A DNA stretch of 64,000 nucleotides from Dicyema japonicum. Its lineage: Eukaryota > Animalia > Dicyemida. The stretch covers positions 640,875 to 704,874 of the forward strand of contig RDEW01000009.1 in assembly GCA_011109175.1 (NCBI GenBank). Direction: 5' to 3'. Positions 6,127 through 49,760 of the stretch are shown here, piece after piece. Both the position numbers and the translations under genes were made by a program. The number at the start of each line of letters is the position of its first letter. Position 1 is the first letter of the stretch. Under the pieces are notes generated by a model that worked only from the letters and a program-made list of their open reading frames with translations, was not told where the DNA came from and made no database searches.

Positions 6127-6445
6127 GCGTGGCGCCATGTGGTGCTTCGTGGCTAATTGGCTGAAGTTTCTGTTTGTTCGTCCGTTCCTCCTCTCTCTTC
6201 CTATTAGAGTGGCGTCATGTGATCCACCTGTTTAGGTGGCGCCGAGTGCAGACCGGCACGAAAAAGGATCATTTGCTCTCCCCCACTCCACTGGAGGGGT
6301 TTCTACAACTGCAAGTATGGACGTCTTACCCATTATGTTGATTCAGGATGGTCTCTGTTTCTGTAGAAGTGAAAACTGGATACACTTAATTAGTTGTTTA
6401 CTTTAACTTCTTTCTCGGTGTATCCGGGGTTAATAAATAATAATT
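6127..6445 (+). mobile_element. Short non-autonomous retroelement, family A (ribozyme-like motif plus LINE-type 3' end)
   Basis: Colinear and highly similar to 23000-23320 and to 58561-58783 (reverse); ends CCGGGGTTAATAAATAATAAT. Confidence 0.85.
6211..6271 (+). ncRNA. Candidate HDV-like ribozyme motif
   Basis: P1 GGCGTC/GGCGCC, P2 TGATCC/GGATCA, P3 ACC/GGT, P4 TGC/GCA, J4/2 CGAAAAA. Confidence 0.55.
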
Positions 6446-7379
6446 TAAGCGCCTATTATTAGATGGTGAGGGTAACTACTCTGCCTAATAGCCCCCTCTA
6501 TGAAGCCATGAACAAATATTTTAAAAATTATCCTAGATACGAGATAACCACATTTTATTTCTGCAGAGCCATCCAGGATTCTGTCCATGTCAGATAGGAC
6601 CTCCCCTGTGTAGGTCTGGAATCACATAGTTTGTTGGGAACTCTCTATTTTTTTCAAATCGTAGACGCTTTATTAAGTGAACAAGGATCTCATTCGAACT
6701 GTGAAAGAGATAAATGTCCATCCCGATTAATTTGTCTGCTAAAGTGGTTAACTATGAGGCCTGCAAGGCGTTTAGTGTCCAACACAAACTGACCGAACTC
6801 GTTCTGTATTTTAAATTAGTTTTAGCTGATCTTCGTTTAAAGATTCGTACAGCCATAAATATTTTTGTACATAAATGAAGTTTTTCATTTTCAACATTTT
6901 TTTCGTTCGGAAAGTCCGGCCTTTATTGTCGAACTCTGTTCCTGATCTGGGGTGGAATTGTATTCCTTAATTTTTAGTTCAGCTTTTCGTTCTGGGTTAC
7001 AGGTTTAGATTCTAGGCCTAATGTCCCGTTGACGGATAGATAATTCATTGACCGTAGAGTTGTAAGCACCTTTGTATTTTACTTTTATTTCTTCTACGGG
7101 TTCCAGCCGTTTCTTTAACGGTCAACGTTAAAAATTGAGTGATTCTTTCACATATGACATGAGGTTTACCGACCACGAAGACTTTATATTCATCCATTTT
7201 CATCTAAGATCTGTCGAGGAAAGCATCATTATTTACCAGTTCTTCAACCACAATTTTTTATTCCTTCTGGCCTAGCATGGTTCACATAAGTTATTCCATA
7301 AAACCTAGGAGTCTTAGCCTGCTGAGTCTTAGCTATTTGTCAATGTTCCTCCATATGAACGAAAGTTCACTAGTAGTAT

Positions 7380-8060
7380 TGTGAATGTTTGTTAACACAC
7401 ACTATAGTGGATTTAGTTGAAAAAATTTATTTCCTCTCATTTATTTTTTCTGCGGCCTTTTCCATAGAAACAAATAATGGGTATTTCAGAAGTCTATCAG
7501 ATATGTTCCAGCAATAAAAATTAGTCTGCAAAGTTGAGATTATATTTCGAATAGATCGAATAAAAATCATCAAGCTCATCTATTGAGGCTGTTAATCTTC
7601 CTGTGTGAAGAGCATACACATTAATGATTGACATAATTGATTTCTTCTTACTTTATCTAATATCCAATTGGATGATAGCAATTCACCCATTAACTTCATT
7701 GCATATATACAGATTGACGTTTAAACTTCCGTTTAGAATTCATCACATATTCTCCAGTTTGAATGTTGACTCTTAAATCTAATGGATTAACTAACTTTTG
7801 CATATGAAAATAACGAAATAAGTTTACAGGCAGTCATTTCACGGGATATTGGGGTATCCACTTCGGCTGTCCGTTATAATATGCTCTTCGCGTTTAGGTC
7901 ACTACCAATTATCGTGTTTTCCAATCTGGTCGGGGCGGTAGCCGTTGGGGCATGACGGTGGAGGGAGTATGTACATATTAGCAACTGTCAATCGGCATTA
8001 GGCTTACATTAGAATCTGCTCTTCAATTTACACTTCAACTGTGCAACCTGAATATACGAA
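7380..8060 (-). mobile_element. Degraded APE endonuclease fragments from two LINE families
   Basis: Minus-strand remnants resembling IINVYA...DFY and VANI...GSDLNAK. Confidence 0.45.
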
Positions 8061-8491
8061 TTTGTTGTATTCATCATCGATTTCCTCGTCCTATCCACAT
8101 GACTAAGACAATATTGGCTTAGTAACAGCAGTAGAATTAAGTCCTATATGGGTCACTTCCTCATTGCGAATAACGACGTTATGTTTTAAGTAGCAATAAA
8201 AGATCTTTCCTCTTAGGGTCTTCCCATACCGAGTCGGCTTCTAGTTCTCTTCGTGGTAACGATTCTTCCTCCAATAAATCCACTGCTCCCTAAAATCAGC
8301 AAAATCTTACCAAAAGGCATTTTCATGATAAAAAATTTCTTTTATGATTGAAAGCTAAGGAAAGTTTGGTCTTCGAATCTCTTTTCCAACACTTAGTTTA
8401 ACTTACAAGTTAGATATTCAGATTAATGAATAATTCATGAAACCAAGAAATTCCAAAATTCTATAAATATGATAACTATCAGTTAGCGGCA

Positions 8492-9866
<1,375 letters not shown>

Positions 9867-10779
9867 ATTAACTAACAAACTTCTAATAAATATTTTTTGG
9901 GGTATTAAAAAATTCACTATCTATTCAAAATTTCACCAATTCATCAGTCAATTAGAAAAATGACGGTTAAGCCAATATATCGCCAATCGAGCACAGAATT
10001 TATTCCCTTGCAAGACATACCGGAAAGTCCTAGTGGGAAATATTGACCTTGTGTTCCAGAAAACTACCTAATACGATTATTGACTTAGCTATACTAAAAG
10101 TTATACGGTTAAATTATTCACTTGGTGCTGCGAAGACGTACAAGAGATTATTTCTTTTTTTCTTATTTCCATCGGACATCTGTATTTCGACAATATTGTG
10201 TGAAAATATGTTAGTGATTATTGCAATTTCACCATATGGAGACTCAAATTTTTGAAGGGTAAAGATGGATTAGTCCCAAAATTTTTCATAACTCTGACAT
10301 TTTTTACAAATATTAATAAATTATAATTACCTTATCACCAGTTTTAAATGAATATTTGTATTGATGTATACCCATTTTTTATTCATTTTTTTAAATATGC
10401 TGAATCCAAATTTGGTGGATTGGATTCAAACTGAAATGACGTTTGTTCTAAATCAATATTATCTAAAAGAAAACCTTTTTGCCCATCTTGACCGGATGCA
10501 TGCTAGTCATCGCAATTTTTATCATTAAGTGATCTTTCACAATCTGAAAAAAATTGTATTAATCTCATTGAAACAACCTATATCTGTATTAATCTCATCG
10601 ACTACGGTGTTTTCACACAAGATGCTGTTGAATCCCTTAATTCCTCGATATTTGTAAATTGGAGTATTGCCTCAAAATAATTTAATTAAAAATTACCTGT
10701 TGATGTATGGGTATACAGATTATAAAAATAAACTGCTTCCTTTATGTTTTTAGTCCAACAACTATTTTCGGACATCATC

Positions 10780-11190
10780 TTAGATGATCCTGTTAAAGAA
10801 AATTGGAGATGAAGGAATCACCTTCCTTACGACTATCTTCAACTTTTTTTAATCAAAACGTAATACCATCAACTTGGAAGCAGGCGTACATTCGCCCAAT
10901 TCTCAAACCAGGGAAACCAAAGGAGGACCAGCGTCATTTAGACCTGTGCCCCTACTCTGATCAATATCAAAAGTCCAGGAAAAACTTGTGCTCACAAAAA
11001 TAAAAGGATTCCTACCGAATATGCCCTTCCAGATTGGCTTTAAAAATGAAAAATTTACGTCCACCCATCTACAAACTTTGACCAACTTCATTCGGGATGA
11101 ATGATCTTGTGATTGTCTGATTGAAGCGTTCGATAATCCCTTGACTCCTTGGATTGTTAGGCCTATTATGAATTTGTTGGACGTTGAAGC
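10780..11190 (+). mobile_element. Ingi-like LINE RT N-terminal fragment
   Basis: VIPSTWKQAYIRPILKPGKP...PFQIGFK. Confidence 0.7.
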
Positions 11191-11619
11191 GATCACATAA
11201 TGCTCTTACATGGGAATTTTAAATTCTGTCCCATTATCAGATTAAAGATATAATGTGATTTTCAGGATCAATTTGCTTTAGTGGAGTCGAAAAACGACAA
11301 ATGTCATATTCTGACACCACTTTCCGAATAATTTCTCTTTTCACGAAAAAATATCTTTGATTGCAATACTGTTCCAATGTGTTGTGTCCACAATGGGTAA
11401 ATTGATAATTTACGTAGCCATTAATTCCATCTTCATGATTATCAGAGATGACAATTTTGTAGTTTCCATTTGTGTCTTTAAGGTATAACCTTTTATTGAT
11501 GGATAAAAAAATTCTTTAAATTTTGAGTTAATCGGTATTTTTTGTTTTGTCATTAGATCAATCCCCTTCTTTTCCAATATTTTCATTATATCATGATATT
11601 CCTGGGTTGTTTTGACAAA

Positions 11620-12170
11620 ACACGAGCCATCAGCTTTCTTTGCCCGATGTTCCTCTCTCGATCCCACACATGTACGTATCGGGGACTTGTCTGGAGAGGT
11701 ACTTTGAGTCACCCCGAAATTTAGTCGCATGAGGATTCCAAAGGAGTCGGTCCGGATCCATGTTCTCCACAAGTCCATCGCTCCGTAATTCTGAACACCC
11801 TCTTCTGCATTTCCTCCACTTTTCTTTTATTTATATAAGATGGAAGGTCCTCACGAAGCGCATGCATATGAGATACATGGCTCGATGTACTGCTTGTATA
11901 TGTTCTTCAATACTGGGTGGGTACCGACCTTCCATATTCCAGGTCTTTAGAATATTAATTTTCCATTCGCATTTTGTGAGAATATTTTCAATATGAGGTG
12001 ATGAACAAAGTGCATATCAAATATCACTCCCAATATCCTCTGACATCTGTTGAAAGGGATATCGTCCATGTCTACCTTCAAGGTGACTGTCCTCTTTCCC
12101 AATCATTTGTCCGAGGTGAAAAGGGAAGTGATTGACTCTTCTGCACTCATCCTAAGCCGGTTTTCTATTA
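11620..12170 (-). mobile_element. Ingi-like LINE post-RT fragment
   Basis: Nucleotide homology to 30715-31000 (CCCTTTCAACAGATGTCA, TCTCATATGCATGCGC). Confidence 0.65.
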
Positions 12171-12185
12171 TCAAAACGTTTAGAC

Positions 12186-13330
12186 CAGAGCTTTTCAAAA
12201 AATAATTCCCGCGGCACACTAATCGTAAAAAAATAATCCACGGCACACATTAAAAAATTAAATTTTTAAGATGTGTAAAACTAAGTACAAAAATTGAGAA
12301 TTTAATGCCCAAATTTTTATTAATAATAAAAATAAAATCTTAATTATTATTGTTTTTGCATATATCATCAATATCAGGTCGAATGGTTGACAAAGCCACC
12401 CGCATTTCAGCATCAATGTTTCTCAAACTTTCACGTTTGTTATATTTCATATTATGCAGCGTAGAAAAACCTGTTTCGCATAAATAGGTCGTTGAGAACT
12501 GTAAAATTATGGTCAGTGCTTGTTTTGATAAACTGGGATATATGTTTCGAATATATATCCAGAATTCTCCAATGTCTAACTCCGTCATCATTAATTTTAA
12601 AGATCGATCATTAAACAGTGCAATAAGTTCTTCATTTTCTTTAACAGATAAGTGTTTTGATTCTGACACAAGAAAAGGATTTCGTATCTAAAAAATATTT
12701 AAAAAATAATAACCCAATCGAATTTTTCAATTTCTAAGTCTGGAAAATAAGCATCCATTTTGTTTTCCAAAATTATTAAATATTCATTAATCAGTCCCTG
12801 TATCGATTCACCATTATATCCTTATTATAATTAAAATATAAAATAAACCATTCGTATTAGGAAACATAGTATAATCGCCATCTAAAACCCTTTTTCTCCA
12901 AAAACTGATTTTCATTTTCAAAGAATTTAATTTGTCCGTCGACGATAAAATAGTCTCAGAACCTCCTTGCATACTTGCAATATTCTCCGACAAAGCACAA
13001 ATCCGACGAGAAACAGTGTTATCTGACAAAGGTATCTTCATTATTTTTTGTTCATATTTATGACCAAACATTGTCCGAGTAATAATACGACAAGCATGGA
13101 TTATCAAGTTTTCGCCAATATTGTGAGGTTTTAGTTGTTTTGCTATCAATTCTGAGATCAGGTATGAACATTTCAATGATTCCTTTGTGTTTACAAAAGT
13201 TTCACTGAACATCATTTGACTAGATCTACGATTCATAGTAAAAACTAAATAATACTTGTGTTGTTTTTTCAAATGGATAAAATAATCCACAGATTTTCGG
13301 AATAGTCCGGATTGGATTTTTTGAGAAGAT
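12186..13330 (-). mobile_element. Buster-type hAT DNA transposon, internally deleted; one terminus retained
   Basis: ORF 12340..12669 has the hAT dimerization motif FSTTYLCETGFS. ORF 12814..13458 has IAKQLKPHNIGENLI and PLSDNTVSRRI. Terminus CAGAGCTTTTCAAA at 12186 is preceded by GTTTAGAC (nnnTAnnn). Subterminal CGGCACAC repeats. Confidence 0.85.
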
Positions 13331-14339
13331 TTATGATCTTGCTCCCATGATCGTGTTGTTGAGGTAGGTGATCGCTTTGTCCAATGAAGGAAAACCATCG
13401 AGGTAACAGTCCTGTAGTAGCTTGCCCGTGATAAGTTGGTACATTTCCCAGTCAGCATTTTTATAATTGTAGCTTCTTTGGATTTTCTTTACACTGGTCG
13501 CTCTCTTGATCTTTATCACAATCGGGTTGTGGTCACTTCTCGTTTCGTATATGACTGACCATGCAATCATCGATGCAAGTGGAGCAGAACAGTTACGTCT
13601 GGTGAAGTAAGCTGGTAATTTTCCCTGAATGGTGTCCTTGTGTTTTTTGAAAGATCATTCAAAATCGTTAGAGTGTCCGTTTGCGAAAGTAGCGATTTTC
13701 CTCTTTTGTCGGCGAGTTGAGAAGACAACCAAAGGGGATGCTTGGCATTCAGGTCCCCGCAGAAGGTAGTCAATCTTGAAAAATTTGGAATATCATAGCC
13801 CTTGGGGCATGAACAAGGAGGAGGAACGTATATGTTTATAAGACATAGACTTCCATTTGTTGTACCCAATGAGACTACGATTACTTCAGTAACCTAATCA
13901 TCTCCAATGCACTGTTTCACCTCTGAGGTGATATCCTTACGTTTCAGATTCTTTCTGAATAGAGTGATTAGGCCTCCGTTTTTTCTATGTTTCTTGTCCA
14001 TCCTAATAGACTTGTAGCCTGGGAATAAAGGAGTAGGATCATTCATTCAGAGTTTAGTTTCTTGGATAGTAGCCACGTCGATCTTCTGATTTGCCAGAAT
14101 TGAACGGAGTTTCCTGATCTTGCCTTTAATCCCATAGTGTTCAATTGGAGAGCAGTAAATTTCCTTTCTCCACGATGGGCTAAGGAATTCCATCGGGAAT
14201 ACGTGGACTTCTTTGAAGCATATCGTCGGGGGTCGACGATGACCCTGGGAGGAGAAGGTCTGATGTTCTTTTTCGGGTAGACATTAGGTGTCCCCTGGGC
14301 GTTTCCAAAACTTGTTTAATCGGTTTACCACATAACGCC
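13331..14339 (-). mobile_element. Ingi/Vingi-like LINE 5' portion (ribozyme-like 5' end plus APE)
   Basis: APE motifs LQLN, IQETK, NIYVPP, GDLNAKH and SDHNP on the minus strand; 5' end GGCGTTATGTGG matches 21912. Confidence 0.8.
14265..14339 (-). ncRNA. Candidate HDV-like ribozyme motif at the LINE 5' end (partly degraded)
   Basis: P1 GGCGTT/AACGCC, P4 GGGGACA/TGTCTACC, J4/2 CGAAAA; P2 and P3 are mismatched. Confidence 0.45.
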
Positions 14340-14456
14340 ACATTAAAATCTTTCCGAGTAGCAACTGTGACATATAACCTAATATTTGAAAACCTACGGA
14401 ATAAGAAATCACAAGTAAGAAAACACCAAATAGGAATAAAAGAAGAAAACTGTCAA

Positions 14457-15203: not shown

Positions 15204-15360
15204 CAGTCAATACTTAATAACACAATATAGCGTGAACTAAAACACGTTATAATTTAATTTTTAATTTGAAAATATTTTTTTATTAATTTAATTTATATAT
15301 AATTTATTTATTTACTATTTTAGAACTAATATTGTTGTATTCGTAGTATTTTATTAAGTT

Positions 15361-20299: not shown

Positions 20300-20550
20300 A
20301 CTATGGCTACCTGATTGGAGATTTCTATTGCTTCCCTCTGGTGGCGTCATTGGATCCACCTTACTCAGGAGACACCTAATGCCTGGTCGGCATTCAAAAG
20401 GACCGATCTGTTCATTCCACCACCGGGAGATAATTTCGCTTTCTGGCAACGAGTTCCAGACAACAGTCTCTGGATCACTGTGCTTGAGTAAGTGTTCTGC
20501 GGAACGTCACTATCAAAAAATTAGTTTGTTTGTTTTACCCTTGGTCTTAG
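20300..20550 (+). mobile_element. Short non-autonomous retroelement, family B, with ribozyme-like motif at 20343-20404
   Basis: GGCGTC ATT GGATCC ACC TTACTCA GGA GACACC TA ATGCC..GGCAT TCAAAA GGACC; 3' end TTAGTTTGTTTGTTTTACCCTTGGTCTT resembles 27740-27760. Confidence 0.7.
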
Positions 20551-21808: not shown

Positions 21809-21911
21809 CGAAAACGTGAATTATTTGAATTCATTTAAATATTTATAAAATAATTTTAATTAATTAGTCTTTAAGTTTGTTAACAACTTTTAATACCATA
21901 AATTTTAGCGT

Positions 21912-22160
21912 GGCGTTATGTGGCTCACCGATTCTGTAAGTTTTGGTAACGCCCAGAGGGCACCTAATGCTCTTCCAAAGAGAATTATTAAACATCTACC
22001 TCCGAGGAAATTGTCTCCCCGGCGGCACGCTTTATCATCCTCATCTACCCGGAAGGAACCCATAGCCCACCGAAAGAAACGGACCACGGTTCTTCAACTA
22101 AATATCAATGGAGTAAGAGGAAAGATATTGGAACTGCGTTCTCTCCTGGCGAAGCCATGT
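21912..22160 (+). mobile_element. Ingi/Vingi-like LINE 5' end (ribozyme-like motif 21912-21982 plus APE start)
   Basis: P1 GGCGTT/AACGCC, P3 ACC/GGT, P4 GAGGGCA/TGCTCTT, CCAAA, CTC/GAG; then VLQLNINGVRGKILEL. Confidence 0.75.
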
Positions 22161-22183
22161 CCCAAAACGTTCTTCCAGAATTT

Positions 22184-22999: not shown

Positions 23000-23320
23000 A
23001 AGCGCCATGTGGTGCTGCGTGGTTAATTGGTTGAAGTTTTCTGCTTGCTTGTCTGTTCCTCCTCTCTCGTCCTATTAGAGTGGCGTCATGTGATCCACCT
23101 GTCTAGGTGACGCCCAGTGCCAGGGCCGGCATGAAAAAGGATCATTTGCTCTCCCCCAATCCACTGGAGGGGTTTCCACAACTGCATGTAATGGACGTCT
23201 TACCCTTTATGTTGATTCCGGATGGACTCTGTTTCTGTAGAAGTGGAAACTAGATACACTTAATTAGTTGTTTACTTTAACTTCTTTCTCGTGTATCCGG
23301 GGTTTAAAAAAAATAAAAAA
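23000..23320 (+). mobile_element. Family A short retroelement; ribozyme-like motif at 23082-23144 with C-to-T at the putative catalytic position
   Basis: Colinear with 6127-6445. GGCGTC/GACGCC, TGATCC/GGATCA, ACC/GGT, TGCC/GGCA, then TGAAAAA. Confidence 0.85.
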
Positions 23321-24862: not shown

Positions 24863-26214
24863 ATGTCATTATGGGGAAAACTGATAATATGCTGGAGTCT
24901 AAACAAATTAGTGTTAAGTGATTCAACAACAAGGAAAATTTCATCAACACCTTTCACCACTATAAAAAGTTCAAATAATTCTTCTGCTAAGACAGGTTTG
25001 TAAGTTTTAACAACTTATATTTTAGTCAGTAGTACCAAAAACTCAAAATCTAGTTACTCTCAATATACTACAAAAACGAATTCGAATAAAACTACTACTA
25101 CATCGATAACTTTACCAAGCAGTTCGAAGAGAGGTAATTCATCAAAACCACATACTCTTCCAAATTCATCGATTTCTAGTTATTCTACTACCAGGAAAAT
25201 TTCATCAACACCTTTCACCACTATAAAAAGTTCAAATAATTCTTCTGCTAAGACAGGTTTGTAAGTTTTAACAACTTATATTTTAGTCAGTAGTACCAAA
25301 AACTCAAAATCTAGTTACTCTCAATATACTACAAAAACGAATTCGAATAAAACTACTACTACATCGATAACTTTACCAAGCAGTTCGAAGAGAGGTAATT
25401 CATCAAAACCACATACTCTTCCAAATTCATCGATTTCTAGTTATTCTACTACCAGGAAAATTTCATCAACACCTTTCACCACTATAAAAGTTCAAATAAT
25501 TCTTCTGCTAAGACAGGTTTGTAAGTTTTAACAACTTATATTTTAGTCAGTAGTACCAAAAACTCAAAATCTAGTTACTCTCAATATACTACAAAAACGA
25601 ATTCGAATAAAACTACTACTACATCGATAACTTTACCAAGCAGTTCGAAGAGAGGTAATTCATCAAAACCACATACTCTTCCAAATTCATCGATTTCTAG
25701 TTATTCTACTACCAGGAAAATTTCATCAACACCTTTCACCACTATAAAAAGTTCAAATAATTCTTCTGCTAAGACAGGTTTGTAAGTTTTAACAACTTAT
25801 ATTTTAGTCAGTAGTACCAAAAACTCAAAATCTAGTTACTCTCAATATACTACAAAAACGAATTCGAATAAAACTACTACTTCGAACTCTTCTATTTATT
25901 CAAGCTCATCACAATCTTCTACGAATTTTACTACTATTTTTACGCACATACCTACCAACACATCAAGTACCCTAAAAAAGTTAAATACTTCCATTATTTT
26001 TCATACGACAAATTCTACTTATTCTTTAACTTATTTCGAGAATCTTTTATCGTCATCTGATTATCTACTTTCCGAGTTGGATTATTTTAATGTTTCTTTT
26101 TTATCCAGTATATATTATACTGTTTTTGTTATTATCAGTGTTCTAACTTCTTATTCTGTCTCTCTTTATTTTATTTTTGATTATTTAAAAAGTATGCATT
26201 TTAATCATTTTTAG
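24863..26214 (+). CDS. Secreted or membrane-anchored Ser/Thr-rich mucin-like protein with tandem exon repeats
   Basis: Signal-like MSLWGKLIICWSLNKLVLS; 77-aa S/T-rich repeats; hydrophobic C-terminus (FLSSIYYTVFVIISVLTSYSVSLYFIF) and TAG at 26212-26214. One A is missing in unit 3 at ~25485. Confidence 0.75.
24932..25880 (+). repeat. Tandem repeat, ~3.6 copies of 261 bp, each containing a 30-nt intron
   Basis: AGGAAAATTTCATC starts at 24932, 25193, 25454 and 25714; units are nearly identical. Confidence 0.95.
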
Positions 26215-27470: not shown

Positions 27471-27543
27471 ATATACTGTTTATTTTTGTGTTTGCTAAAC
27501 TTTTTGATTCTGAGTCAATTCAACGTTAATAGATTTCATGATC

Positions 27544-27770
27544 GCGTGGCGCCATGTGGTGCTACGTGGATAGTTGTATTTTCCTTCCTTCCGATGACGT
27601 CACTGGATCCACCTTCTGAAGAGGCGCCCAATGCCTGGCCGGCATCAAAAGGATCTAACAATTCTTCCCCGGAGACAACGTCGTTACCTGGTGTTAAGTT
27701 CTGGAATGCTGTAACGAGTCAGGATCGAGGAGTTAGTTAGTTTGGTTACCCTTGGTCTTTAGAAATAATT
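27544..27770 (+). mobile_element. Family B short retroelement with ribozyme-like motif at 27596-27656
   Basis: Starts CGCGTGGCGCCATGTGGTGCT like family A. GGATCC/GGATCT, ATGCC/GGCAT, CAAAA. Confidence 0.75.
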
Positions 27771-29699: not shown

Positions 29700-31030
29700 T
29701 GAACAACTTAATAAAATTCCAAAATTTCACACAAGAAGTTCAGGAAATCGGATACACTATTATCACTCAGAAAACTGAAGAAAGTGTCAGAGCCGCAGTT
29801 CTCAGAGAGATGTGAGGGATACTCTATATTCCGCAAAAAACAACATACTCTTACGGACCAGACAACATTCCGGTTATTCTATTGAAAAATCTTGGAGATG
29901 AGGAAGTTACTTTTATGACGTCGATTTTCAATTATTCGATTAACCAAAATGTGATACCGTTATTATGGACCAGGCACTAAAACGGCCAATACTGAAACCT
30001 GTAAGACCAAAAGATGACCCAGCGTCTTTTAGACAGATATCATTACTACGTTCTATTTCAAAAATCCTGGAGAGGCTTATTCTCAGGAGAATAAAAGAAT
30101 TCTTACCAGAGAGTCCTTTTCAACACGGATTCAAAAAAAATGAGAGAACCACATTTACAGTTACAAACATTGACCGTGTATATTCGAGTCGGATTTGCAA
30201 ACAAGCCAAGCCGAGACATTTAAAACAGTGCTCTGCTCGATCGACATACACAAAGAATTTGACTCAGTGTCGAGAAAAATATTTCAATCAGAGATCCCAG
30301 GGAAGCTCAGGTTTTTGATCACCAACTTCTTAAATGAACGAAGAGAACGTGTATGCCTCGCAGAATCGAAATCCATCTCACGTCTGCTCCCGAACGGAGT
30401 CCATCAATTATCTCCTTCATCCCCTGCTATGTTTAACCTCTTACTGGCCAATCTCCAGACTCTCGAATCTGATAGTGATGTTATACTCTTTTATAATGAT
30501 GATATTGTTTTGGCTACGCGAGATCTGAAGATCCAAAGGCCAAAGAAAGAATACAAATTAACCTGGACCAGCTTAACGCCTGGATAATGAAAAACCGGCT
30601 TATGGTGAATGCAGAGAAGTCGTCTACGCCCCTTTTACCTTGGACAAAATATAAGTTTTGGGTGAAATTAAAAGATTGGAAAAAAAGACAGTCACCTTGA
30701 AGCTAAGCAAGGTCGACATCCCTTTCAACAGATGTCAAAGAATCTTGGTGTGATACTTTGATATGCATCTCTGTCTGACATCACACGTAAAAAACATTCT
30801 TTTGAAATGCGAGAAGAAACTGAACGTATTAAAAAGTTCATCGGGAGTGGTACTCACCCGGTCCTGGTGAACGTATACAGACAGTTCATCGAACAATGTT
30901 TCTCATATGCATGCGCCTCGTGGGACCGTCCATATCTTGGACAAATATGATAAGATCGAGGAAATGCAAAAGAGGGCTTTCAAAGTAACGGAATGCTGGA
31001 TTTGTGGAGATCACCGAACCGGAGTGATGC
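29700..31030 (+). mobile_element. Degenerate Ingi-like LINE (RT and post-RT)
   Basis: SYGPDNIPVILLK, FRQISLLRSISKILERLI, PFQHGFK, SIDIHKEFDSV, YNDDIV. Confidence 0.8.
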
Positions 31031-33420: not shown

Positions 33421-33985
33421 TTGTTAAGAGAACTGTATTCTATTATGTTCCCTAATCATAACTTGGTCATTTCTCTCCAAAACTGAGTTTAGGTACCTTT
33501 TTTCCTTGTCTGAGACCTTATTTAATATAACCTCCATACTAGATTACGTTGAATAATTCTCTTAATATTTAGATCGATTATACGCTAATAAACATATGTA
33601 GTTATAACAGGTTTATAAGTATTACTTAAATTTTAATCATTAAGACATTATGTGGTTCATCTGTCCAAGGAGATGACATTCATGCCTGCATACAAAAATG
33701 ATATCTCTCTTTCCTACTCTACTAGAGAGTTTCCACAACAATTGATATTGATGAGAGTGATGCTAGCCTCACACTGGGATCAATAGTTAGTTGAGGACTC
33801 TCTTTTCCTTTAACTCGGTGATCCTGGAAATAAATATTTTAGTTTATTGAACCAAAAAACCACCGTCAAATCCAAAATAATAAAATTCAGGTAATCCCAG
33901 CCTCCCTCAACAGTCTCCGCATCTTTTCTCGGTGTTCGACTGCGTTTCCGATATGGACGGGGTCCGCATACTAGAGTCCTTCGCA
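33421..33985 (-). repeat. Inverted near-identical duplicate of 47210-47784 (LINE 3' end plus promoter and exon 1 of the synaptotagmin-like gene)
   Basis: Reverse complement matches 47210-47784 with a few substitutions and indels, including a 10-bp deletion. Confidence 0.92.
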
Positions 33986-40323: not shown

Positions 40324-40479
40324 CCCTTTAATTATTTTTGCTAAGTAGAAAATTGTTTAAATAATTACTTTTTTATAAAACTTTATACGATTATTTTAAA
40401 AAAATCAATCAAAAATGGTTCGAGGTTGAGTTGCCTCTCGCTTTTTTATATACCAAATATATACAAAAAATAGAGTTGC

Positions 40480-40760
40480 AGTCATCTTCAATGATGTGTG
40501 CTAGATTTCCGAGTATTTTGAGGAAAGCGTAGGACGAATTTCCGAGGTTGCCTGAGATTTCTATAGCAAGAGAAACAAATGTTATGATGCTTCGATTAAA
40601 ATTTAATCAGAAATTGAAATCTTTAAGTCAAAGAGACAATGCTTTGAATTAAATCGAAGATTAGAACCCTCTGAGTTCCTAAGTCATGCTATGGACTTTG
40701 ACGAGGGTAACTGTTTGCGATATTGCACGGAAGCACTTGAATGAAGATGTCATAATTTTT
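40480..40760 (+). mobile_element. R4-like element fragment
   Basis: TTTGAATTAAATCGAAGA (FELNRR) matches 61270-61290. Confidence 0.45.
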
Positions 40761-41319
40761 ATTAAGAACTTCACTGGTCTCCACAATTTTAGAGTTGGTT
40801 CTTCACTGGTACCACATACTTCATTCTAAAAAACTGATTCTGTCAATCCTAAGAATTTAAGATTAATCAAATTTATGCCTGGTTTTTGGAAAAAAAACTT
40901 GTCACTAAAATCACTCGCTATGAAGATGTGTTCAATCTCATTTCGGACTGTTAATTTGGGACTAAAAAGCAATATCAAGAAAGTAAAGTCATGATTTTGT
41001 CGATTGTTCAAAGCTGAGATGACTTAGTATCTCCATTCTTTAAAAAGTACACGGAAATTTTCCAAATACAATGTATTTGTATAAATCCACCACTGCCTTC
41101 AATATACCACCAATAAGACACTAAAGAGCATGTTCATTGAGTATAAACACGGATCCCATAAAGCATTCGAAGCCTCAGGGTTAGTAAAATTTGAGTACGA
41201 GATGAGGATGGTCTTCTTTGATGTTCCATGAAAATGATTTAGCCAAAAAAATATTAGCTCTTAACTAGAACTTTTATATTTTTTCCAACTTTTATATTTA
41301 GCTCTTAACTGAAATTCGT

Positions 41320-42190
41320 GCGTCATGTGGTTCGCCTTGTCTGGTGGCGTCAGATACAAGTCAAAAGTGTGCTTGACCACGCCGCAATCAAAAATAACGG
41401 CTCCGGCTTCATCGGTCTGTGTGGTCAAAAAACAATTCGTTTCTTTCATTCAAGGCTAGAAGCCTTAAATACACGTAATTTGAAGAAAAATCCACCCCTC
41501 TTCAAACTCTAGTGAAAGATGATCGTTGTCTATACAGGAAAGCCGTGGGTACTCTGGAACATAGGAAAAACCTCTCGATCCTGTTGAGGCGTACCGGGAT
41601 CACTTATTAGTTGGTTTACTCCTTCTTTCTTGGTGTTCCCTTTTCGGGGTTATTAAATAAATAAGTCAAAAGTGTATCCTAAAAGAACCATTTGTCGACG
41701 ACCATCCAAAGGAGTTCCCCCTGGACGGCACTTCCTACACATCCGTGCACTTTTCCGGTGGAGACTCGTCATGTTAGGAGATGTTGAAATGAATACGGGA
41801 CCAAAAGTTTTAAAGATACTTAGCCTGAACATTAACGGAGTTAGAGGCAAGGCATCCGAACTGAGATTATATTTGGAGAGGAATAAAATTGATATCTGCC
41901 TTTTACAAGAGACCAAGCTTTCTGAGAAATCCACTACTAAATTTACCGGTTTCAATGTATCGAGAGTCAACCGACAATCGGGCCAAGGTGGAGAACTATT
42001 GACCCTCGTCAAGAGAAACATGATGTTCGATAAACACTCCTCCACATTCAGGAATCTAATGGAAGACGCAAACACAGAATTTATTGGGATTTCGGTACAA
42101 AATTCTCTCGGAGCTATTATCATCGCCAACATCTATGTTCCCCCTCCAGGTTCCTGTGCAAAAGGATTTTCTATGGATTTGTCTGCCCTA
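41320..42190 (+). mobile_element. Ingi/L1Tc-like LINE 5' end: split ribozyme motif, 2A-like peptide, APE
   Basis: Motif halves at 41320-41357 and 41674-41690; LVMLGDVEMNTGP at 41765-41803; ILSLNINGVRGK, LLQETK, IANIYVPP. Confidence 0.85.
41371..41662 (+). mobile_element. 5'-truncated LINE 3' end inserted with a 13-bp TSD
   Basis: AAGTCAAAAGTGT at 41358-41370 and 41663-41675; ends GGGATCACTTATTAG...GGGGTTATTAAATAAAT. Confidence 0.88.
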
Positions 42191-42319
42191 GATATGATGG
42201 AAAACGAAACCGAAAACCAAATTTATTCCAAAATAAGTAAGGAGTTATTTTTAGGATATTTAAACGTGTCCGCCTATGTGGCCTGGACACTTCCGATATA
42301 TCCACACTCCATTTAGTTA

Positions 42320-45300
42320 TCTTCTATCGTTGGATCCCATTGATTATTTTCTCTACGATGTTTTTAACAAGAGTTAGAATCATGTCTTCTTCATTACTGA
42401 GAGCATCCCAGAGCCTTTTCCTAAAGCCAACTTTATTGCCGACCTTCTGGTTTTTATCCATGAAAAACATTATTCTTTCTCTTTGGCAAAAGAAAAACCA
42501 TGCTTCGCATCCATATAGCAGTTCCGGTAGGATGATTTTCATGAAGATGAACAAGAAGGTTTCCAGGCTTACAAACAACTTTCTCGTACATAAGAGTACT
42601 TGAAGCGCCTTTTTCCTTCTTAGTCTTATGTCCTTCATGAAGGAACCTTTCCATCTATTGCTATCCCGAGGTAGCGCATTGAGTTTACTTTAGGAATCTC
42701 TAATGAGTAAGGCTGCTTCTGATGCCTCCTTATGCGACTTACTCGTAGAGAGCTGGATTTCTCCGTAGACAATCTCATCAATCTTTTAGTGCACCAGTCC
42801 TGAACTTGTCCAATGAATGACAAGATCCTTTCTCCGAAAGAGTTGATTTGGTAGATGTATTTGTGATCAGAGTATCATCGACGTATATCAATAGTTTTGT
42901 GTTTATATCCGGGGGAGTTAGAAAATCTGATAGGAATATGTTGAATAGCAGAGGGATCAGGACGGAACCCTGTGGAACTCCCCTCTTCAGTATGATGTCT
43001 TTCGACATATGTGCTTCAACACGTACTTGAGAAATCCGTCCTGTTAGGAAATCCCTTATCCAGATGAGAAGTTTCTTTTGGATCTGAGCAGCTGCTAGCC
43101 TTGATAGGAGTGCTTCATGCCACACACTATCGAAAGCCTTGGACAGATCCAAACATACCAGGTTGACTAGTCTTTTGACTTCCAGAACTTCCAGACCTCT
43201 CAATACGTTGAATGCATCTGGTAGATACAGTCCGTGCATGATTCTCCTGGTCTGAAGTCTTATTGTTCTGCGAGGAGGAAACCACTCTCTTCTATGTGGT
43301 CGTTAAGCCTTCTGAAGATAATTCGTTCGATAATCTTGGAGATCGAACAGATGAGACTTATTGGCCTATAGCCGAGAGGGTCCCTCCTCGATTTTCCCGG
43401 TTTCAGTATCATTCTGACAATGGAAGATTTCCAGCGTTTTGGGACATGACCATGATGAATGCTTGCATTGAATAAATTCTTCAGTATGGGAAATAGAGCC
43501 TCTGGGGCTTCCTTGAACAATCTTATGCTTAGATGGTCGAGTCCAGGAGCGTTAGCCTTGCTTTCATGATTGCAGTCATGACTTCATCCGTAGTTATTTT
43601 CATTTCAGTATCCTTAAGATCGTCCAAACAGTAGGTTAAAATTTCACGTGAAGAATCTAACGTCTCCCTCGGAATAAGCTCCATCGGGTTGACCCCCTGA
43701 ATACGGTCCAGTTGTTTCTTAAAAGTATCTGAGGCTTCTTCCATAGAACATAGTCCACCTTCTGGCTTGGTCAAGGAGATTTTTATGTCATTCCTTTTCT
43801 GGCTAGTTATTCTTTTGTAGAACTTCCAGAACGAGGAGTCTTTGGTGTTTAGTTTGCTTTCCTCTGCCCTCAAACATTGTTCTTAAGATAGTATTGTTCC
43901 TTCTTCAATGGCTTTCTTGATTATCTTCAATTGTCCGGTCAATGCAATCCGGTCTATCCAGTCCACACATCTTCTGAGTTTGGTCCTCAGGCGATTCCTT
44001 TCATTGATCAAAAATAATGTGGAACGCGAAAGACTGATGCTCTTTTCATAATTGGTACTTGAAGATCTTTTCCTTGCATAAAGCATTAAGTATGTCTCCA
44101 TCATGATGGAGAGTTCATTATCTATGATGTTGATTTCACTTCGGGAATAATCTTTATCTTCCAGTCTTTGAGGTTTCTTGATATGTACCTTCTGTAGTGT
44201 TCCCAGTTTATTCTTGTTAGGTCGTAACCTGTAAACACAGAGTCCATGTAGTCTGGAGCTAGGTTCAATAACATCTCTTGGGGTATATGATCACTCCCGA
44301 TGTCCCACATGATCATCGGCTTTTCTACATAATTGTAGAGTGGTGGTGACACCAGGAACACCCCAAGCATGTCTCCTCCGTAGTGCGAGTAATGATTCGG
44401 TTTTTCCGATGTCAAAATCTCAAATCCAGTTTTATCACTCAATTTCCTTAGTCTGATTCCATCATCGTTAGTACCGAGGCATCCATATTCAATGTTTTTG
44501 GCATTTAGATCACCCACTAGGATAGACATATCATTTCTTGTGAAGAATTCTTCAATTTCTGTGGAACACTTTCTAAGGTCTTTTGAATACATTCCACCGA
44601 CGTGAATCCAACTGCCGCAGCATCTCACCTGACGGAAACAAATTCGCAGTGTGTATTCATAATAATTTTTGGCTCACGTATCTGTAGAACTTCACTGGTA
44701 GAACAATGTTGTTCCAGTACCAGCTACTGCACCTTCGACCCATGGAATTTCTATAAAATTGAATCCCTCGATCATTGTGTTGTTGGTCATTTTCACTTTG
44801 GTCTCGTTGACCACCAGGATTTCAATCTTGGTGGACGATAGTAGTAGTGCCAGGTCATGACGACTCTTCTTTAAGGATCGGGCGTTCACCAGCAGTATCT
44901 TCAAGTTTCTTTTCAATTTTCTTGTTGGTGGCCCGGAAACTCCATGGCCAAATCCACCATATTGCATAAATCCATTCCGAGTATGTTACTTAGTTCCTTC
45001 AGTATACATACTATTTCCTTTAGCTCTTTTTTAACACTTTCTGATAACTTTTCCTTCCGTAGCCAGGCCGACTCTCGCGGAGGAGGTGCTGCTTCGTACT
45101 TGTTAGTACTTGGGCCAATTATCCTTTTTTGGGCTGGCGGTTCCAATTTCTTGGTTATAATATCCGTCTGTTTTGGTTCCTGTTGTCGATTCGGGAGTTT
45201 AACTTTCGTCTGGCCTCCATGAATACAGGGCATCCTTTGTATCTTGCGTCGTGTCTTGTTGACCCGCAGTTAACACATTTTCGTTCAAGAGTTGGATCCG

Positions 45301-45826
45301 CATCACACTTGGTGGTGTCGTGTTTTCCCGCGCAACAGAAGCCTTTTTTCTTTCCCGTGCACTGGCATGCAAAGTGGCCGATTTGCTGACAACTGTAGCA
45401 GATTGGTGGTCCTCTTCGCATCTATTCACAAGAAATCTTGTTCGTCCCGATGTAGAAGCCACATCTAATTAGTGATGTAGCTCCGACTTCATTGATCGTG
45501 GCCTTCGCCAATGGCATGGCCTGTGATCCTCTGGTCATTCGGGTAACTTTCGTGACTGAGAGAGCCATCTCCTGAAGGTAGTCCAAGAGGTCGTCCTCCT
45601 TTACCCAGAAGGGGAGGTTCCTGAGGACAATCTCAGACGGTTTTGTTGAGATTGTCTTGAAATGGTGATTGTCATTACCAAAGGGGCAGGTCTCATTCAC
45701 CGCCTCTATAAAGGTGGCCACATGGGAGTTATCCAGGAAATCCAGTCGGAAAGAGCCCGGTCCTCTGTGGCTCATCCTCATAGATCCGTATTGGTCATAG
45801 TATTGTAAAACATTTGCGATTTTAAT
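42320..45826 (-). mobile_element. Near full-length degenerate Jockey-like LINE
   Basis: ORF1 knuckles CYSCQQIGHFACQC and CVNCGSTRH; APE ILLVNARSL, VGDLNAK and GSDH; RT YRPISLI, CLDLSKAFDSVWH, GVPQGS and YVDD. Confidence 0.88.
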
Positions 45827-47400
45827 CCCGTCCATATCGGAATGTGATGGAAAACGTGTTGGTGTCCGGAGATTTTAATGCCAAGCACCCTTCGTGGTAT
45901 GAGAAACAACCTCCAGACATAAGGGGACTTCATATCTCCCAATTAGAAAATCTGTCCACTATGAACTACCCAATTAGGAATACACGATCCCCGTATAATA
46001 CCAAGGATTCGGTTACATCACCGGATATTACGTTATGTTCACCACGGCTTGCTCCGCTTATATGCTGGTCTGTGAACTGACTTACGAAGCGACCATAATC
46101 CCATTCTGATCAAGATCAATTGTACACCAATGACGCGGTCAAAACACATTATTTTTTATGACTATATTAATGCTGACTGGACAAGATTCAGAAGATATGT
46201 GGATTCGGCCCTGCGTCCAGACAAGAATCCTAGAAAGGATAGTTATGATACTCACGCGACATTCCCTCCCGGATGCCAGATTTCAGCATGGTTTTAAAGA
46301 GGGACGATCAACTATCACACACCTACCTACATTAAAGAAGTTCATAGAAAATGGCCTTAACAAAAGACCATGACAGAAAAAGACGATTGTATGCTCAATT
46401 GATATCCAGAAGGCTTTTGACTCAGTTTTGAGGAAAATTATCACGCACAAGATATATTCGTCGAACATTGACGCAAACCTGAAATTGTGGTTGGGAAATT
46501 TCTTGAGTGGCCGACGAGGACGAGTACACTATGGCAATCGATGTTCCGTACCGAGACTATTAGCAAAGGGCGTTCTTCAGGGCTCCCCATTATCTCCTCT
46601 CTTGTTTAACGTTATGATGGATGACTTGCCACTCCCTCAGGGGGACAATGACATATTATTAACGTATGCTGATGATATAGTCATTGCCTCGAGGGATGTG
46701 AGTATTGTGGAGGCAACTGAATAATCTAAGTTTATGGCTTTAGGAAAATCAATTGACTGCTAGCCCGGAAAAGTCGGTGTTGACCCTATTCACGACAAAC
46801 AGAAGACTAGGGAAAGTATCAATTGACGTCACACTGGATGGGAAGATTATCCTTCAAAACAATTACCAGAAAATCATGGGAGTTACCTTTGACACCTTCT
46901 TAACTTTTACAAAACATGTCGAAAATATGTTATTGACTTGTACGAGGAAAATCAACTTCCTGAAGGCGTTCTTGGGAAACCTAAGAGACAAAAAAGGTCT
47001 GAGTAATCTGGAGGTCATATACAAACAGTTCATCGAGGCTACAATAGGATACGCATGTAATATCTGGGGATCTAACCTTTCTGCAACGAATTTGGACAAG
47101 ATATGCAACATTCAAGTGAAGGCAGCAAACCTACTAAGGAAATATTCCAGAGTGAAATTCTGCCAAAGAAACCTAGAAAATATGATAGAGGCGACTGGAA
47201 CAGTGCTTCTGCGAAAGACTCGAGTATGCGGACCCCGTCCATATCGGAAATGTGCAGAAACGCAGTCGGAACACCGAGAAAAGATGCGGAGACTGTTGAG
47301 GGAGGCTGGGATTACCTGAATTTTGTTATTTTGGATTTGACGGTGGTTTTTTGGTTCAATAAACTAAAATATTTATTTCCAGGATCACCGAGTTAAAGGA
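45827..47400 (+). mobile_element. Internally deleted Ingi-like LINE (APE part, RT, 3' end)
   Basis: GDFNAKHPSW, FQHGFKEGRST, IDIQKAFDS, GVLQGSPLSPLLF, YADD; ORF ends LREAGIT*. Confidence 0.85.
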
Positions 47401-47667
47401 AAAGAGAGTCCTCAACTAACTATTGATCCCAGTGTGAGGCTAGCATCACTCTCATCATATCAATTGTTGTGGAAACTCTCTAGTAGAGTAGGAAAGAGAG
47501 ATATCATTTTTGTATGCAGGCATGAATGTCATCTCCTTGGACAGATGAACCACATAATGTCTTAATGATTAAAATTTAAGTAATACTTATAAACCTGTTA
47601 TAACTACATATGTTTATTAGCGTATAATCGATCTAAATATTAAGAGAATTATTCAACGTAATCTAGT

Positions 47668-49050
47668 ATGGAGGTTATATTAAATAAGGTCTCAGACAAG
47701 GAAAAAAGGTACCTAAACTCAGTTTTGGAGAGAAATGACCAAGTTATGATTAGGGAACATAATAGAATACAGTTCTCTTAACAAATTAACTGTAGAAAAC
47801 TTCAGAAAGGATTATTTTTATCAAAAACATTGATTATAAACTTTTCTACGAATACGATATGTTGTGAAATATGCAGGTGGTTCTCCGATTCAAAGAGAAT
47901 GATATATTGTTCGAAATGTGGAATTCTTATTTGCCAAAAGTGCCATCAGAGTATCTCCAAGTCAGGAAATTCTGAGATTTGTCACTGGTGCTACATGTAT
48001 TGCGTGAATGAACATTTTAGAGAATTCAAAAAAATCATGAAATGGCATCATCAATTTAGAAATATTTCATTCCGAAAATTATATTTTGGTATTTTTAGTT
48101 TACGGTAAACGAATAGTTGGAGACAATCTCGTCAGCATGATTGGGGACACTGAGAATGCTAACATTAAAAAGTTGTTTTGAGGGAGGAGTTTAGTGAACA
48201 ATTTTTGAAAAAATATGTTAATAAAATGAAAATGAAAGCTACAAAGAAATATAAGAAAGTTGATTCACAGACAGCTGAAAACGATCAGAACGGAGGCATT
48301 TATTTGAAATTAAAATATGACAAAGATGCAGAAAAACTAAGAATTTACATAAATCAAATCGAGGAACCACCAAGTGGCAAAGTTAGCCAATGGAATGCAG
48401 CCATAATTTTACTCCCCGACGTTGATAATTCAACCAAAGTCAAATTCAAATTAAACGATAAAAATAAAAATTTGCCTGACAAGTTTATTGAAGTTTCAAT
48501 TGTCTAATCAATTTTAAGTATCACGTGGCCGAATATCAAGTAAATTCTATGAGTGTCTTTATTCAATTCACAGCTAAAATGCTATGGAAAAGTCGAATTG
48601 TTTATTCTACAGAGACCCATGTTGCTATGGTAGAAAATAACTTACAGTACTGGGCTCCATTTCAAAAAAATGTAAAAATTAATTACCTAATTTGGGCTAT
48701 TTCGAAATCTCAATATGCTTTAAGATTACGTCTCATGGTATCAATTGAAGAAGAGAAATTTACGATTATCGTAAATTCTCTGTTTGGTATGAAAGAATCA
48801 AAATCAACGTGCTATAAAATTATTTTGTAATATTAACTTAAAATCTAGAACCGCTAACAATTCTATTTTGGAGGGTCAAAGAGATATACTTGGAAAGAAG
48901 TGGATTATTTTTGATGAAAAGTTTAAATTTGGAAATTACCCCAAATATGAGAAAATCGAAGTCGATATTCTCAGAGTGAAGGGAGTGAAAACAGTAATAT
49001 CAAGGGATCTAATTGAATTAAAGAAAAGTCAGGGTTTATTTAATTTATAG
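47668..49050 (+). CDS. Synaptotagmin-like / rabphilin-like Rab effector (Rab-binding helix, Cys-rich zinc finger, tandem C2-like domains)
   Basis: Exon 1 MEVILNKVSDKEKRYLNSVLERNDQVMIREHNRI; 24-nt intron at 47772-47795; CEIC..CSKCGILICQKC..ICHWC; GGIYLKLKYDK C2-like strand; stop at 49050. Confidence 0.75.
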
Positions 49051-49449
49051 AATTAAACCGTCACCAAGTGGTTGTGGGGGAGAATTCAGACAAGTCTTTA
49101 GTTGAGATATTATCAGAAAAGGAAAAATGCGAACTTATCCTTTACTTGAATCCAATAAAGCACTGATACGATTACTAATAAAGTTAAGTTAACAATGATT
49201 TTTAAATTTTCAATTAATTATTGTCGTATGTCATAGCGTCCGGACTGTTGATATTGTCCTGGTTGATAAGTAAATTTTATTATTTGAAATCGCCTTAGAG
49301 TTTTACTAACCCGGACAGTGCCGATTTTCTTCAAAAAATGAAAAAAATTTGAGTCAATAAAGTGATTAAGCGAAAAAAAAGTTTAAAATAGAAAAGGTCC
49401 CTTAGAGTTAAGATTTATGATTAAGGTTTATGGTTAAGATTTGCTAACT

Positions 49450-49760
49450 TAAGAGAAAAAACAACCGATTAGATGTATCCAGTTTCCAAGGTCGCAGAAG
49501 CAGATACCTTCCAACGTCACACACAAGTACATTCAGAATCAGCGGAAAGGGAAGAAAGTATCAAGTATTTGACGTTTTGTGAACTCCTCCAATGGGGTGA
49601 GATATAAAATAGATTCTTATTTGTGCTATCCTGGCACTGTGAGACACCTGAGAAGGGAGGAAGATATGACGTCACTCAATTAGAACCAGAGAAGATAAAG
49701 AACTGCGGAAAGTAAGTGAAACCTTAGACCAAGTAGACAGTAAGAAGAATCAAAACAGGA
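49450..49760 (-). mobile_element. Diverged family A copy with a degenerate ribozyme-like motif at 49613-49673
   Basis: Minus strand GACGTC ATA TCTT...GTGC/GCAC AAAT AAGA; CCCCATTGGAGGAGTTCACAA and GGAAACTGGATACATCTAAT resemble family A. Confidence 0.55.

Follow-up and report, generated by a model that had tools for sequence, protein, structure and literature searches.

Why should one folded RNA motif of 62–78 bases recur, in shifting sequence, through a single stretch of an animal genome, and is it a self-cleaving ribozyme of a new kind? This question is raised by a 64,000-nucleotide stretch of DNA from the dicyemid Dicyema japonicum (contig RDEW01000009.1, positions 640,875 to 704,874 of the forward strand; hereafter the window, with coordinates counted from its first letter), for which an earlier sequence-only reading had proposed a possibly undescribed variant of the ribozyme of hepatitis delta virus (HDV). 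In our assessment, the motif is probably an HDV-like-ribozyme module that stands at the 5′ end of 2A-type long interspersed nuclear elements (LINEs) and of their internally deleted short derivatives. It is neither a free-standing new ribozyme nor a new ribozyme class; it is a diverged relative of known LINE 5′ modules.

An HDV-type fold kept by changes on both strands

The nested double-pseudoknot topology of the HDV type is real, because helices P1, P2 and P4 and, where it forms, the two-pair helix P1.1 are kept by changes on both strands. Every copy tiles without gaps as P1, A, P2, P3, L3, P3′, P1′, two bases, the P4 hairpin, an A-rich J4/2 and P2′, and the helices of every copy can be read in the order P1-P2-P3-P3′-P1′-P4-P4′-P2′. 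Of the 84 P2 pairs scored across 12 sequences, 67 are formed, as against 24–42 once the partner strand is slid by 1–3 bases. In intact copies P2 is a perfect 7 bp, with three spellings: GTGATCC/GGATCAT in the short element, TGGATCC/GGATCTA in the copy at 27596, and GTGGTTC/GAACCAT in the copy at 41320 and in a related octopus locus, L001. P4 is paired everywhere, as had been noticed from the sequence, with sequences that are unrelated between families and with G-C/A-U swaps within families. P1 is 5–7 bp long across the copies and has changed on both sides once within the window (C-G to U-A in the 21912 and 14339 copies), while its spellings in relatives include GATCGTC/GACGATT, GGCTCC/GGAGCC and CGCTGC/GCAGCG. 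For P1.1, in which L3 positions 2–3 face the two bases after P1′, two pairs form in the copies at 41320 (UG/CA) and 20343 (UA/UA) and in the related loci L003, L006 and L007b, and one pair in L002; in the canonical register the inner pair is G-C (41320), A-U (20343), C-G (L003, L006, L007b) or U-A (L002). P3 (CC/GG) is invariant and so uninformative either way. When P1, P3 and P4 are taken together in a model-fitted alignment, 89% of the cells are paired, compared with 34–62% with slid partners; this alignment leans towards the model and includes two partly non-homologous rows, and it was weighted below the position-based counts. RNAalifold, unaided, recovered P1 and P4, and folding of single sequences yields either P1 with P4 or P2 with P3 and P4. 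The covariation and topology proposed by the sequence-only reading are thus upheld, including the P1.1 changes, and its helix strings are correct as given (P1 GGCGTC/GACGCC, GGCGTT/AACGCC and GCGTC/GGCGT; P3 ACC or GCC, each with GGT; in J4/2, an A-run after a C).

The eight copies and the deleted ninth that had been reported are all present. They were followed up with a covariance model (R1), trained on the copies at 6211, 23082, 20343, 27596 and 49673(−) together with the octopus locus L001, supplied with a structure made up of P1, P3 (its CC/GG core) and P4, and run on both window strands with filters off. The five window copies used in training scored 62–80 bits, and the model, of the kind that the sequence-only reading had suggested, recovered the three remaining full copies without having been trained on them: 41318–41402 (26.7 bits, E 1e-6), 21910–21988 (24.6 bits, E 6e-6) and 14263–14341(−) (23.6 bits, E 1e-5). 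It also matched the deleted copy at 53068–53116(−) and the 3′ remnant of a 5′-truncated short element at 58756–58818(−). Two decayed relatives, at 33642–33704(+) and 47501–47563(−), scored 9.3 bits each (E 0.66, not significant), and the scan of both strands gave no significant match, full or partial, beyond those named. The copies and the element that carries the first of them are as follows.

6126–6443 (+): short non-autonomous element of 318 bp, consisting of a head, a pyrimidine-rich spacer, the full motif, a leader-ORF remnant and an A-rich tail (ORF, open reading frame)
6211–6272 (+): motif copy in the high-copy short element, R1 80.2 bits; P1 GGCGTC/GGCGCC, P2 GTGATCC/GGATCAT (7 of 7 pairs), P3 ACC/GGT, L3 TGTTTA, P4 GTGC/GCAC, then GAAAAA
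14262–14339 (−): sister of the 21912 copy, untrained, heading a decayed LINE (endonuclease 14133–13789)
20343–20409 (+): motif copy of a family of about 150 copies, R1 76.5 bits; P1 with one C.A mismatch, P1.1 UA/UA in the canonical register, J4/2 TCAAAA
21912–21985 (+): motif copy with a 15-nt L3, untrained; P1 GGCGTT/AACGCC, P4 GAGGGCA/TGCTCTT, P2 only CTC/GAG; an ATG in J1/2 opens a leader ORF
23082–23145 (+): motif copy in the second short-element copy (23002–23316), R1 79.5 bits
27596–27657 (+): motif copy of a LINE with a reverse transcriptase at 29965–30584, R1 66.7 bits; P2 TGGATCC/GGATCTA (7 of 7 pairs), L3 TTCTGA with its G kept, an unpaired C opening J4/2 (CAAAA)
33642–33704 (+): very decayed motif relative inside a 565-bp repeat, with a twin at 47501–47563 (−)
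41320–41370 (+): 5′ part of an insertion-split motif; P1 GCGTCA/TGGCGT, the P2 5′ strand, P3, L3 TTGTCT, P1.1 UG/CA, the P4 5′ strand GATAC; ATG at 41325
41674–41691 (+): 3′ part of the split motif; the P4 3′ strand GTATC, J4/2 C-TAAAA, P2′ GAACCAT; in frame into a 2A remnant and an endonuclease ORF (to 42316)
49612–49673 (−): decayed motif copy of a short-element relative, R1 62.1 bits; upstream spacer kept, P1 and P2 mostly broken when aligned by homology
53068–53116 (−): deleted copy lacking P1′, P4 and part of the core, R1 15.7 bits (E 0.005)
58756–58779 (−): motif remnant from the P4 3′ strand to P2′, opening a 5′-truncated short element (58587–58779) whose truncation point falls within P4 and not at the predicted cut

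The motif at the head of 2A-type LINEs and in their short derivatives

Endonuclease or reverse transcriptase domains lie downstream of the copies at 14339, 27596 and 41320, and the last of these allows the arrangement to be followed in detail. Its P4 loop holds a 5′-truncated short element with an A-rich tail (305 nt with the second copy of the target duplication, 41371–41675(+)), flanked by the 13-bp target duplication AAGTCAAAAGTGT (41358–41370 = 41663–41675); across the insertion gap, the two motif halves and the octopus locus L001 are collinear. Compared separately, the two halves supply P4 GATAC/GTATC, J4/2 C-TAAAA and P2′ GAACCAT; the P2 helix TGGTTC/GAACCA that had been reported exists in this copy only once the insertion is skipped. 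A decayed 2A peptide, GDVEMNTGP, directly precedes the endonuclease, in frame, after this copy (a scan of the window for NPGP found none, since the remnant reads NTGP), and, after correction for the 305-nt offset, the ATG at 41325 shares the reading frame of the endonuclease ORF.

In an exhaustive profile search of a library of 1.8 billion proteins, the closest protein to the endonuclease ORF (window 41672–42313) was P0001, a protein of Octopus sinensis (E 4e-52; next best 3e-23), and a 2A-type NPGP/NPAP is found in 71 of the 150 best relatives of this ORF, nearly always near the N-terminus. A separate search for homologous proteins returned nothing for the decayed ORF and three matches for P0001; related loci were fetched through protein matches, and few extra ones were obtained because these matches were few. 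At L001, the locus of P0001, an intact motif occupies 1496–1561, its ATG (1501) lies 5 nt after the first G of P1, and the ORF runs through the fold (MWFTF...GDVEQNPGP, with an intact 2A) and on into the endonuclease; a second octopus copy, L007b, has the same arrangement of fold, 2A and endonuclease. In three families the LINE start codon stands inside the fold, in J1/2 and 5–7 nt past the predicted cut (41325; L001 1501; L007 at about 3149(−)), and because of this an RNA cut at the predicted site would be almost leaderless. In L003 the start codon (408) is at the border of J4/2 and P2′.

Octopus sinensis is the host of D. japonicum, and its LINE (contig VCDQ01001009.1) shares 53% protein identity with that of the window, with 88% DNA identity in the motif. 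The 21 kb around this octopus relative are free of the window's short element. The likeness between octopus and dicyemid may go back to a transfer between host and parasite long ago or to common spiralian ancestry, or else it may stem from dicyemid sequence within the octopus assembly.

Related 2A-LINE loci carry canonical-looking HDV-type folds at the same place as the window motif. Their features are listed below by position within each locus.

L003, 351–417: P1 GGCTCC/GGAGCC, L3 TGCACGT, P1.1 GC/GC, J4/2 CAAAT; the ORF's ATG spans J4/2 and P2′
L006, 138–216: L3 TTCACGC, P2 TCCTGCC/GGCAGGA
L002, 213–283: L3 TTTACGC
L007, 3086–3160 (−): 7-bp P1 with a G.U base pair (a G1.U wobble), L3 TTCTCGT, P4 of 7 bp, J4/2 ACAAACA
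L004: GATCC, TTTCTGA and AAAAGGATC in common with window copies

The folds of L003, L006, L002 and L007 (3086–3160) resemble the window motif in their helix order and in where they stand, immediately ahead of the leader-2A-endonuclease ORF or overlapping its start, but differ from the window copies in a 7-nt L3 of the form U-N-C-A/U-C-G-Y and in a G-C or U-A P1.1 in the canonical register. L004, L001 and L007b share sequence with the window copies (GATCC...GGATC and ATGTGGTTCACC). We infer from these comparisons that the window motif descends from the HDV-like ribozymes of related 2A-LINEs.

The short element is put together from the same parts. Further copies lie at 23002–23316 and 58587–58779; in its head the 5′ part of the motif itself is present as a half-copy (GGCGCCATGTGGTGC, 6129–6150), and its leader-ORF remnant reads ICSPPT, as in P0001. 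Because it is built of head, motif, leader remnant ICSPPT and tail, it is an internally deleted partner of the LINE. A tRNA-derived head like that of a short interspersed nuclear element (SINE) was considered and rejected: ARAGORN gave no match, and the head is the half-copy just described. A half-motif is also present upstream of the 27596 copy, at 27543–27576, and in an octopus copy GGTTCACCTTCTCGTG, which partially duplicates the motif's 5′ part, immediately precedes G1 (L007 3160–3185(−)). Such partial duplicates upstream of a full motif look like the outcome of template switching at the RNA 5′ end, and in both window and octopus they recall the tandem Pr77 hallmarks of SIDER2. Judged from summed contig depth against unique DNA, the short element would be present in roughly 10^4 copies, and by depth ratio the 20343 family numbers about 150 and the 21912 family about 25–30 copies, all of these being rough figures. 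The DNA runs behind them comprise 138–187 Mb of contigs at 18–30x unique depth; the sequencing runs that contain the motif sequence are DNA from one sample, with uniform unique depth of about 20x or 370x.

This organization has a well-characterized counterpart. The first 77 nt of L1Tc, a retrotransposon of the L1Tc-ingi LINE clade in trypanosomatids, are L1TcRz/Pr77, a proven HDV-like ribozyme and promoter, followed by 2A and an apurinic/apyrimidinic (AP) endonuclease, and the fold is common to NARTc/RIME and to the short, degenerate SIDERs, which include inactive members and members with tandem hallmarks (PMC3185411, PMC4035085, PMC5814959); L1TcRz has a single P1.1 pair (PMC3185411, PMC4035085). 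Like the L1Tc/ingi module, the window motif heads a LINE with 2A and then AP endonuclease, has a weak P1.1, and occurs in internally deleted partners and short elements, and the published L1Tco sequence has the same P3, ACC/GGU. In L1Tc, however, the fold is the first 77 nt and both cleavage and promoter activity are proven, whereas six window copies lie 55–85 nt inside their element, and the L3 G is missing from most copies in the window. What the sequence-only reading took for a possibly undescribed HDV-like variant is instead the 5′ module of 2A-type LINEs and of their non-autonomous derivatives, as in L1Tc, NARTc and SIDER (PMC3185411, PMC4035085). Nor does a non-canonical P1.1 mark it as novel, weak AU-type P1.1 helices being already on record in two fast HDV ribozymes (U:A plus C:U, and U:A plus U:U; PMC13635239). 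A P1.1 that is not two G-C pairs, such as TG/CA or TA/TA, is accordingly not disqualifying; those fast ribozymes nevertheless keep G25 and the catalytic C, both shown to be necessary (PMC13635239).

R2, RTE and other retrotransposons without long terminal repeats have also been described as carrying HDV-like ribozymes at their 5′ ends (Eickbush & Eickbush 2010; Ruminski et al. 2011; works cited in PMC5786205). These ribozymes share with the window motif the topology, the position at the front of the RNA and the proposed roles in co-transcript processing and translation start, but they fit the standard descriptor (7-bp P1 with G.U, 7-nt L3 with a 3′ G, free C after P4), which most window copies do not. 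It is known that the 5′ regions of RTE and Vingi LINEs have given rise to SINE bodies, and a 5′ ribozyme would truncate anything upstream of it (Kojima 2018, PMC5786205). The short element likewise joins a LINE 5′ region to a 3′ tail; no ribozyme fold was reported inside the SINE bodies of that study (PMC5786205), whereas the short element retains one mid-element. Our literature search found no paper linking HDV-like ribozymes with octopus, its scope leaving dicyemids aside, and for Vingi and ribozymes it returned general papers only. The pairing of HDV-like ribozyme, 2A and endonuclease, proven in the trypanosome L1Tc, is hereby extended to a spiralian genome and to a very abundant short retroposon.

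Catalytic core, cutting and competing explanations

The explanation that we favor is as follows. The LINE is organized as fold, leader-2A peptide, and AP endonuclease with reverse transcriptase, and its RNA folds with a P1 of 5–7 bp, a P2 that crosses P1 and reaches 7 bp at most, a P3 with a CC/GG core, a variable P4 hairpin and a two-pair P1.1. In ancestral or best-kept elements, this RNA would be cut just 5′ of the first G of P1, which would free the element RNA from read-through transcripts and leave an RNA with a 5′-OH, the start codon of the 41320/L001 family then lying 5 nt from the new end, in J1/2. In D. japonicum the core would since have drifted: LINE-type copies keep an unpaired C before the A-run and some of them the L3 G, and the short element lacks the L3 G, can have its C in the closing pair of P4, and has some 85 nt of element sequence ahead of the cut site. 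Catalysis by the window motif, and any role in translation, are put forward here as predictions.

A free C precedes the A-run in the copies at 27596 (CAAAA), 20343 (TCAAAA) and 21912 (CCAAA) and in the 41320 halves (C-TAAAA); the G near the 3′ end of L3 is kept in the window only by the 27596 and 21912 copies, and is kept in all of L003, L006, L002, L004 and L007b. L3 reads TGTYTA, TTGTCT or TTACTCA in window copies, or is a 15-nt loop, and its leading U is present in most of them; in HDV this U and the G near the 3′ end of L3 correspond to the U20.G25 metal site. The +1 base is G in all window copies, with a C as its partner in most and a U in the 41320 copy and L007b; active L1Tco has C at +1. 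Similarity between the 41320 copy and L001 begins within about 3 nt of G1, the upstream flanks being unrelated, and such a start would fit the copying of a cut RNA.

Several observations weigh against an active ribozyme module, or weaken the case for the fold itself. In the short element, in L001 and in the copies at 27596, 21912 and 14339, P1.1 is either out of register or missing; P1 has one mismatch in each of the 20343 and 27596 copies; P2 is only 3–4 bp long in the 21912 and 14339(−) copies, and the 49673(−) copy is badly decayed. The nine copies, all from D. japonicum, represent about four mutually related lineages, and shuffle controls overstate significance because the copies are so few and related. 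At the gathering score and at E<=10, Rfam gave no HDV-type match on the whole window or on two 181-nt stretches; it gave none on the related loci either, including the canonical-looking L003, L006 and L002, and because these too were missed the negative carries no weight. In the core, the L3 guanine is absent from the short element (family consensus TGTCTA), the copies at 20343, 41320 and 49673, and L001. In an HDV ribozyme, G25A markedly impairs cleavage and 6-thio-G25 slows it about 1000-fold (PMC13635239). The sole C before the A-run can close P4 in the short element (GGCAC-GAAAAA), in L001 and in the 49673 copy. The copy at 23082, where the family consensus is GGCACGAAAAAGGATCA (from loose ends of DNA-read contigs), has a private C>T at the final P4 base that preserves the closing pair as G.U; if the changed C is the catalytic one, this copy would be dead, because a C-to-U change at the catalytic position abolishes HDV ribozyme activity (PMC13635239).

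The 5′ ends of the elements point in the same direction. Sequence is conserved 55–85 nt upstream of G1 in six copies (short element, 27596, 20343, 49673 and 53116), the best-supported 5′ boundary of the short-element family is its head (23002) rather than G1 (loose ends, top rows only), and the two 5′-truncated copies each start within P4. The head would be lost from any RNA that was cut efficiently, and the RNAs that served as templates were therefore uncut. The conserved GT just 5′ of P1, which had been noted as unexplained, is now partly explained, as it belongs to the transcribed upstream sequence of these six copies. Genomic HDV likewise has U at −1. Two features, the missing L3 G and the conserved upstream element sequence, thus argue against efficient cutting in most window copies, and we would expect cleavage to be weak or nil in the short element and at best moderate in LINE master copies.

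It is with these observations in mind that the alternatives must be weighed. The most serious of them, which we hold to be a real but distinctly smaller chance, is that all the D. japonicum copies are a catalytically dead relic whose pseudoknot is kept for another job: it could shield the 5′ region when this is uncapped or read-through, position the start codon so that initiation can do without a cap, or offer the LINE proteins a place to take hold. It would account for helices kept by compensatory changes while the L3 G and the free J4/2 C are not, for the roughly 85 nt that the 10^4-copy element retains upstream of a cut that efficient cutting would have removed, and for the start codon that three families (41320/L001, 21912 and L007b) have within the fold; several adequately folded SIDER hallmarks are, moreover, inactive in vitro (PMC4035085). 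A dead relic fits less well with the unpaired C kept in the 27596, 20343 and 21912 copies and the 41320 halves, the first and third of which also keep the L3 G, with a 41320/L001 homology that begins at or within 3 nt of G1 as if cut RNA had been copied, and with the activity of L1Tc-type ribozymes that have a one-pair P1.1 (PMC3185411).

Quite improbable, by comparison, is a motif that is mainly a DNA element, its 5′ half GTGRCGTCATGTG, near the cyclic AMP-response element/activating transcription factor (CRE/ATF) site TGACGTCA, acting as an internal promoter like the Pr77 of L1Tc, with the RNA pairing secondary. Such a promoter would explain the near-invariance of CGTCA, of the A at position 7 and of other unpaired positions, exact TGACGTCA occurs in the 27596 and 49673 copies, and a single stretch of 77 nt serves L1Tc as promoter and as ribozyme (PMC3185411, PMC5814959); a protein-binding site, however, leaves unexplained the two-strand changes in P2, P4, P1 and P1.1, which lie 20–50 nt apart, the ATG start codon accounts for part of the invariance, and a predicted promoter could coexist with the RNA fold. 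As the sole explanation, a CRE or promoter was rejected on the compensatory changes. That there is no structure at all, the copies being homologous repeats whose helices come from shared ancestry and chance, we regard as scarcely credible. The small number of independent lineages, the invariant P3, the copies that break P1 or P2 and the blindness of shuffle controls to relatedness would speak for it; against it stand the three perfect 7-bp spellings of P2, the four Watson-Crick types at the inner P1.1 pair, the unrelated but paired P4 sequences, the far lower slid-partner controls, and the same fold in LINE relatives without detectable sequence similarity.

Beyond the 5′-module explanation, which we continue to prefer, we tentatively entertain a further step, less likely than not to be correct, in which the fold was exapted as a non-cutting module in the 10^4-copy retroposon and in LINE leaders, for cap-independent initiation, with its J1/2 start codon, or for recognition by the LINE protein, or in which cutting persists without the L3 G. 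Under exaptation, selection would have removed the catalytic G and C and so spared the upstream head from being cut off. The copies form a natural series, from canonical ribozymes in related LINEs to copies with all helices but with the core bases lost, that is useful for asking what the HDV fold does once cutting is no longer needed.

The sequence-only reading had also held that a core so far from the textbook form would be missed by library models and descriptors, and this was borne out by Rfam, as described above, and by a strict conventional descriptor (P1 6–7 bp, P3 3 bp, L3 5–9 nt, P4 4 bp or longer with a free C next to its end), which matched 0 copies even though, for that scan alone, about 180 nt from both flanks of the 41320 insertion had been joined. 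A relaxed descriptor did find the true sites but false ones too, and served as a pointer only. Library models and standard descriptors thus undercount HDV-like ribozymes in retrotransposons.

The window around the copies

The window is AT-rich animal DNA (GC 31–41%) and is full of decayed LINE pieces. For comparison, the D. japonicum genome has 36.7% GC, 48.9% repeats, a size of 67.5 Mb and a mean intron of 38 bp (PMC6736024), and a gene for a STE20-like protein kinase in the window, at 8743–9291(+), has exons only 23–55 nt apart. The decayed LINE headed by the 14339 copy contains a nested DNA-transposon fragment, an ORF with the C-terminal dimerisation domain of a hAT transposase (12343–12669(−)). 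The two very decayed motif relatives lie in a 565-bp inverted repeat (33421–33985 and 47210–47784, 97% identical), each arm of which also carries a very decayed relative of the short-element body. A tandem array at 24917–25881 has a 261-bp period and about 3.7 units that are 98–99% identical, with a depth that varies strongly between DNA runs, and small tandem duplications are found at 1565–1794 and 2825–2946 (114–117 bp at 95% identity and 49 bp at 96%).

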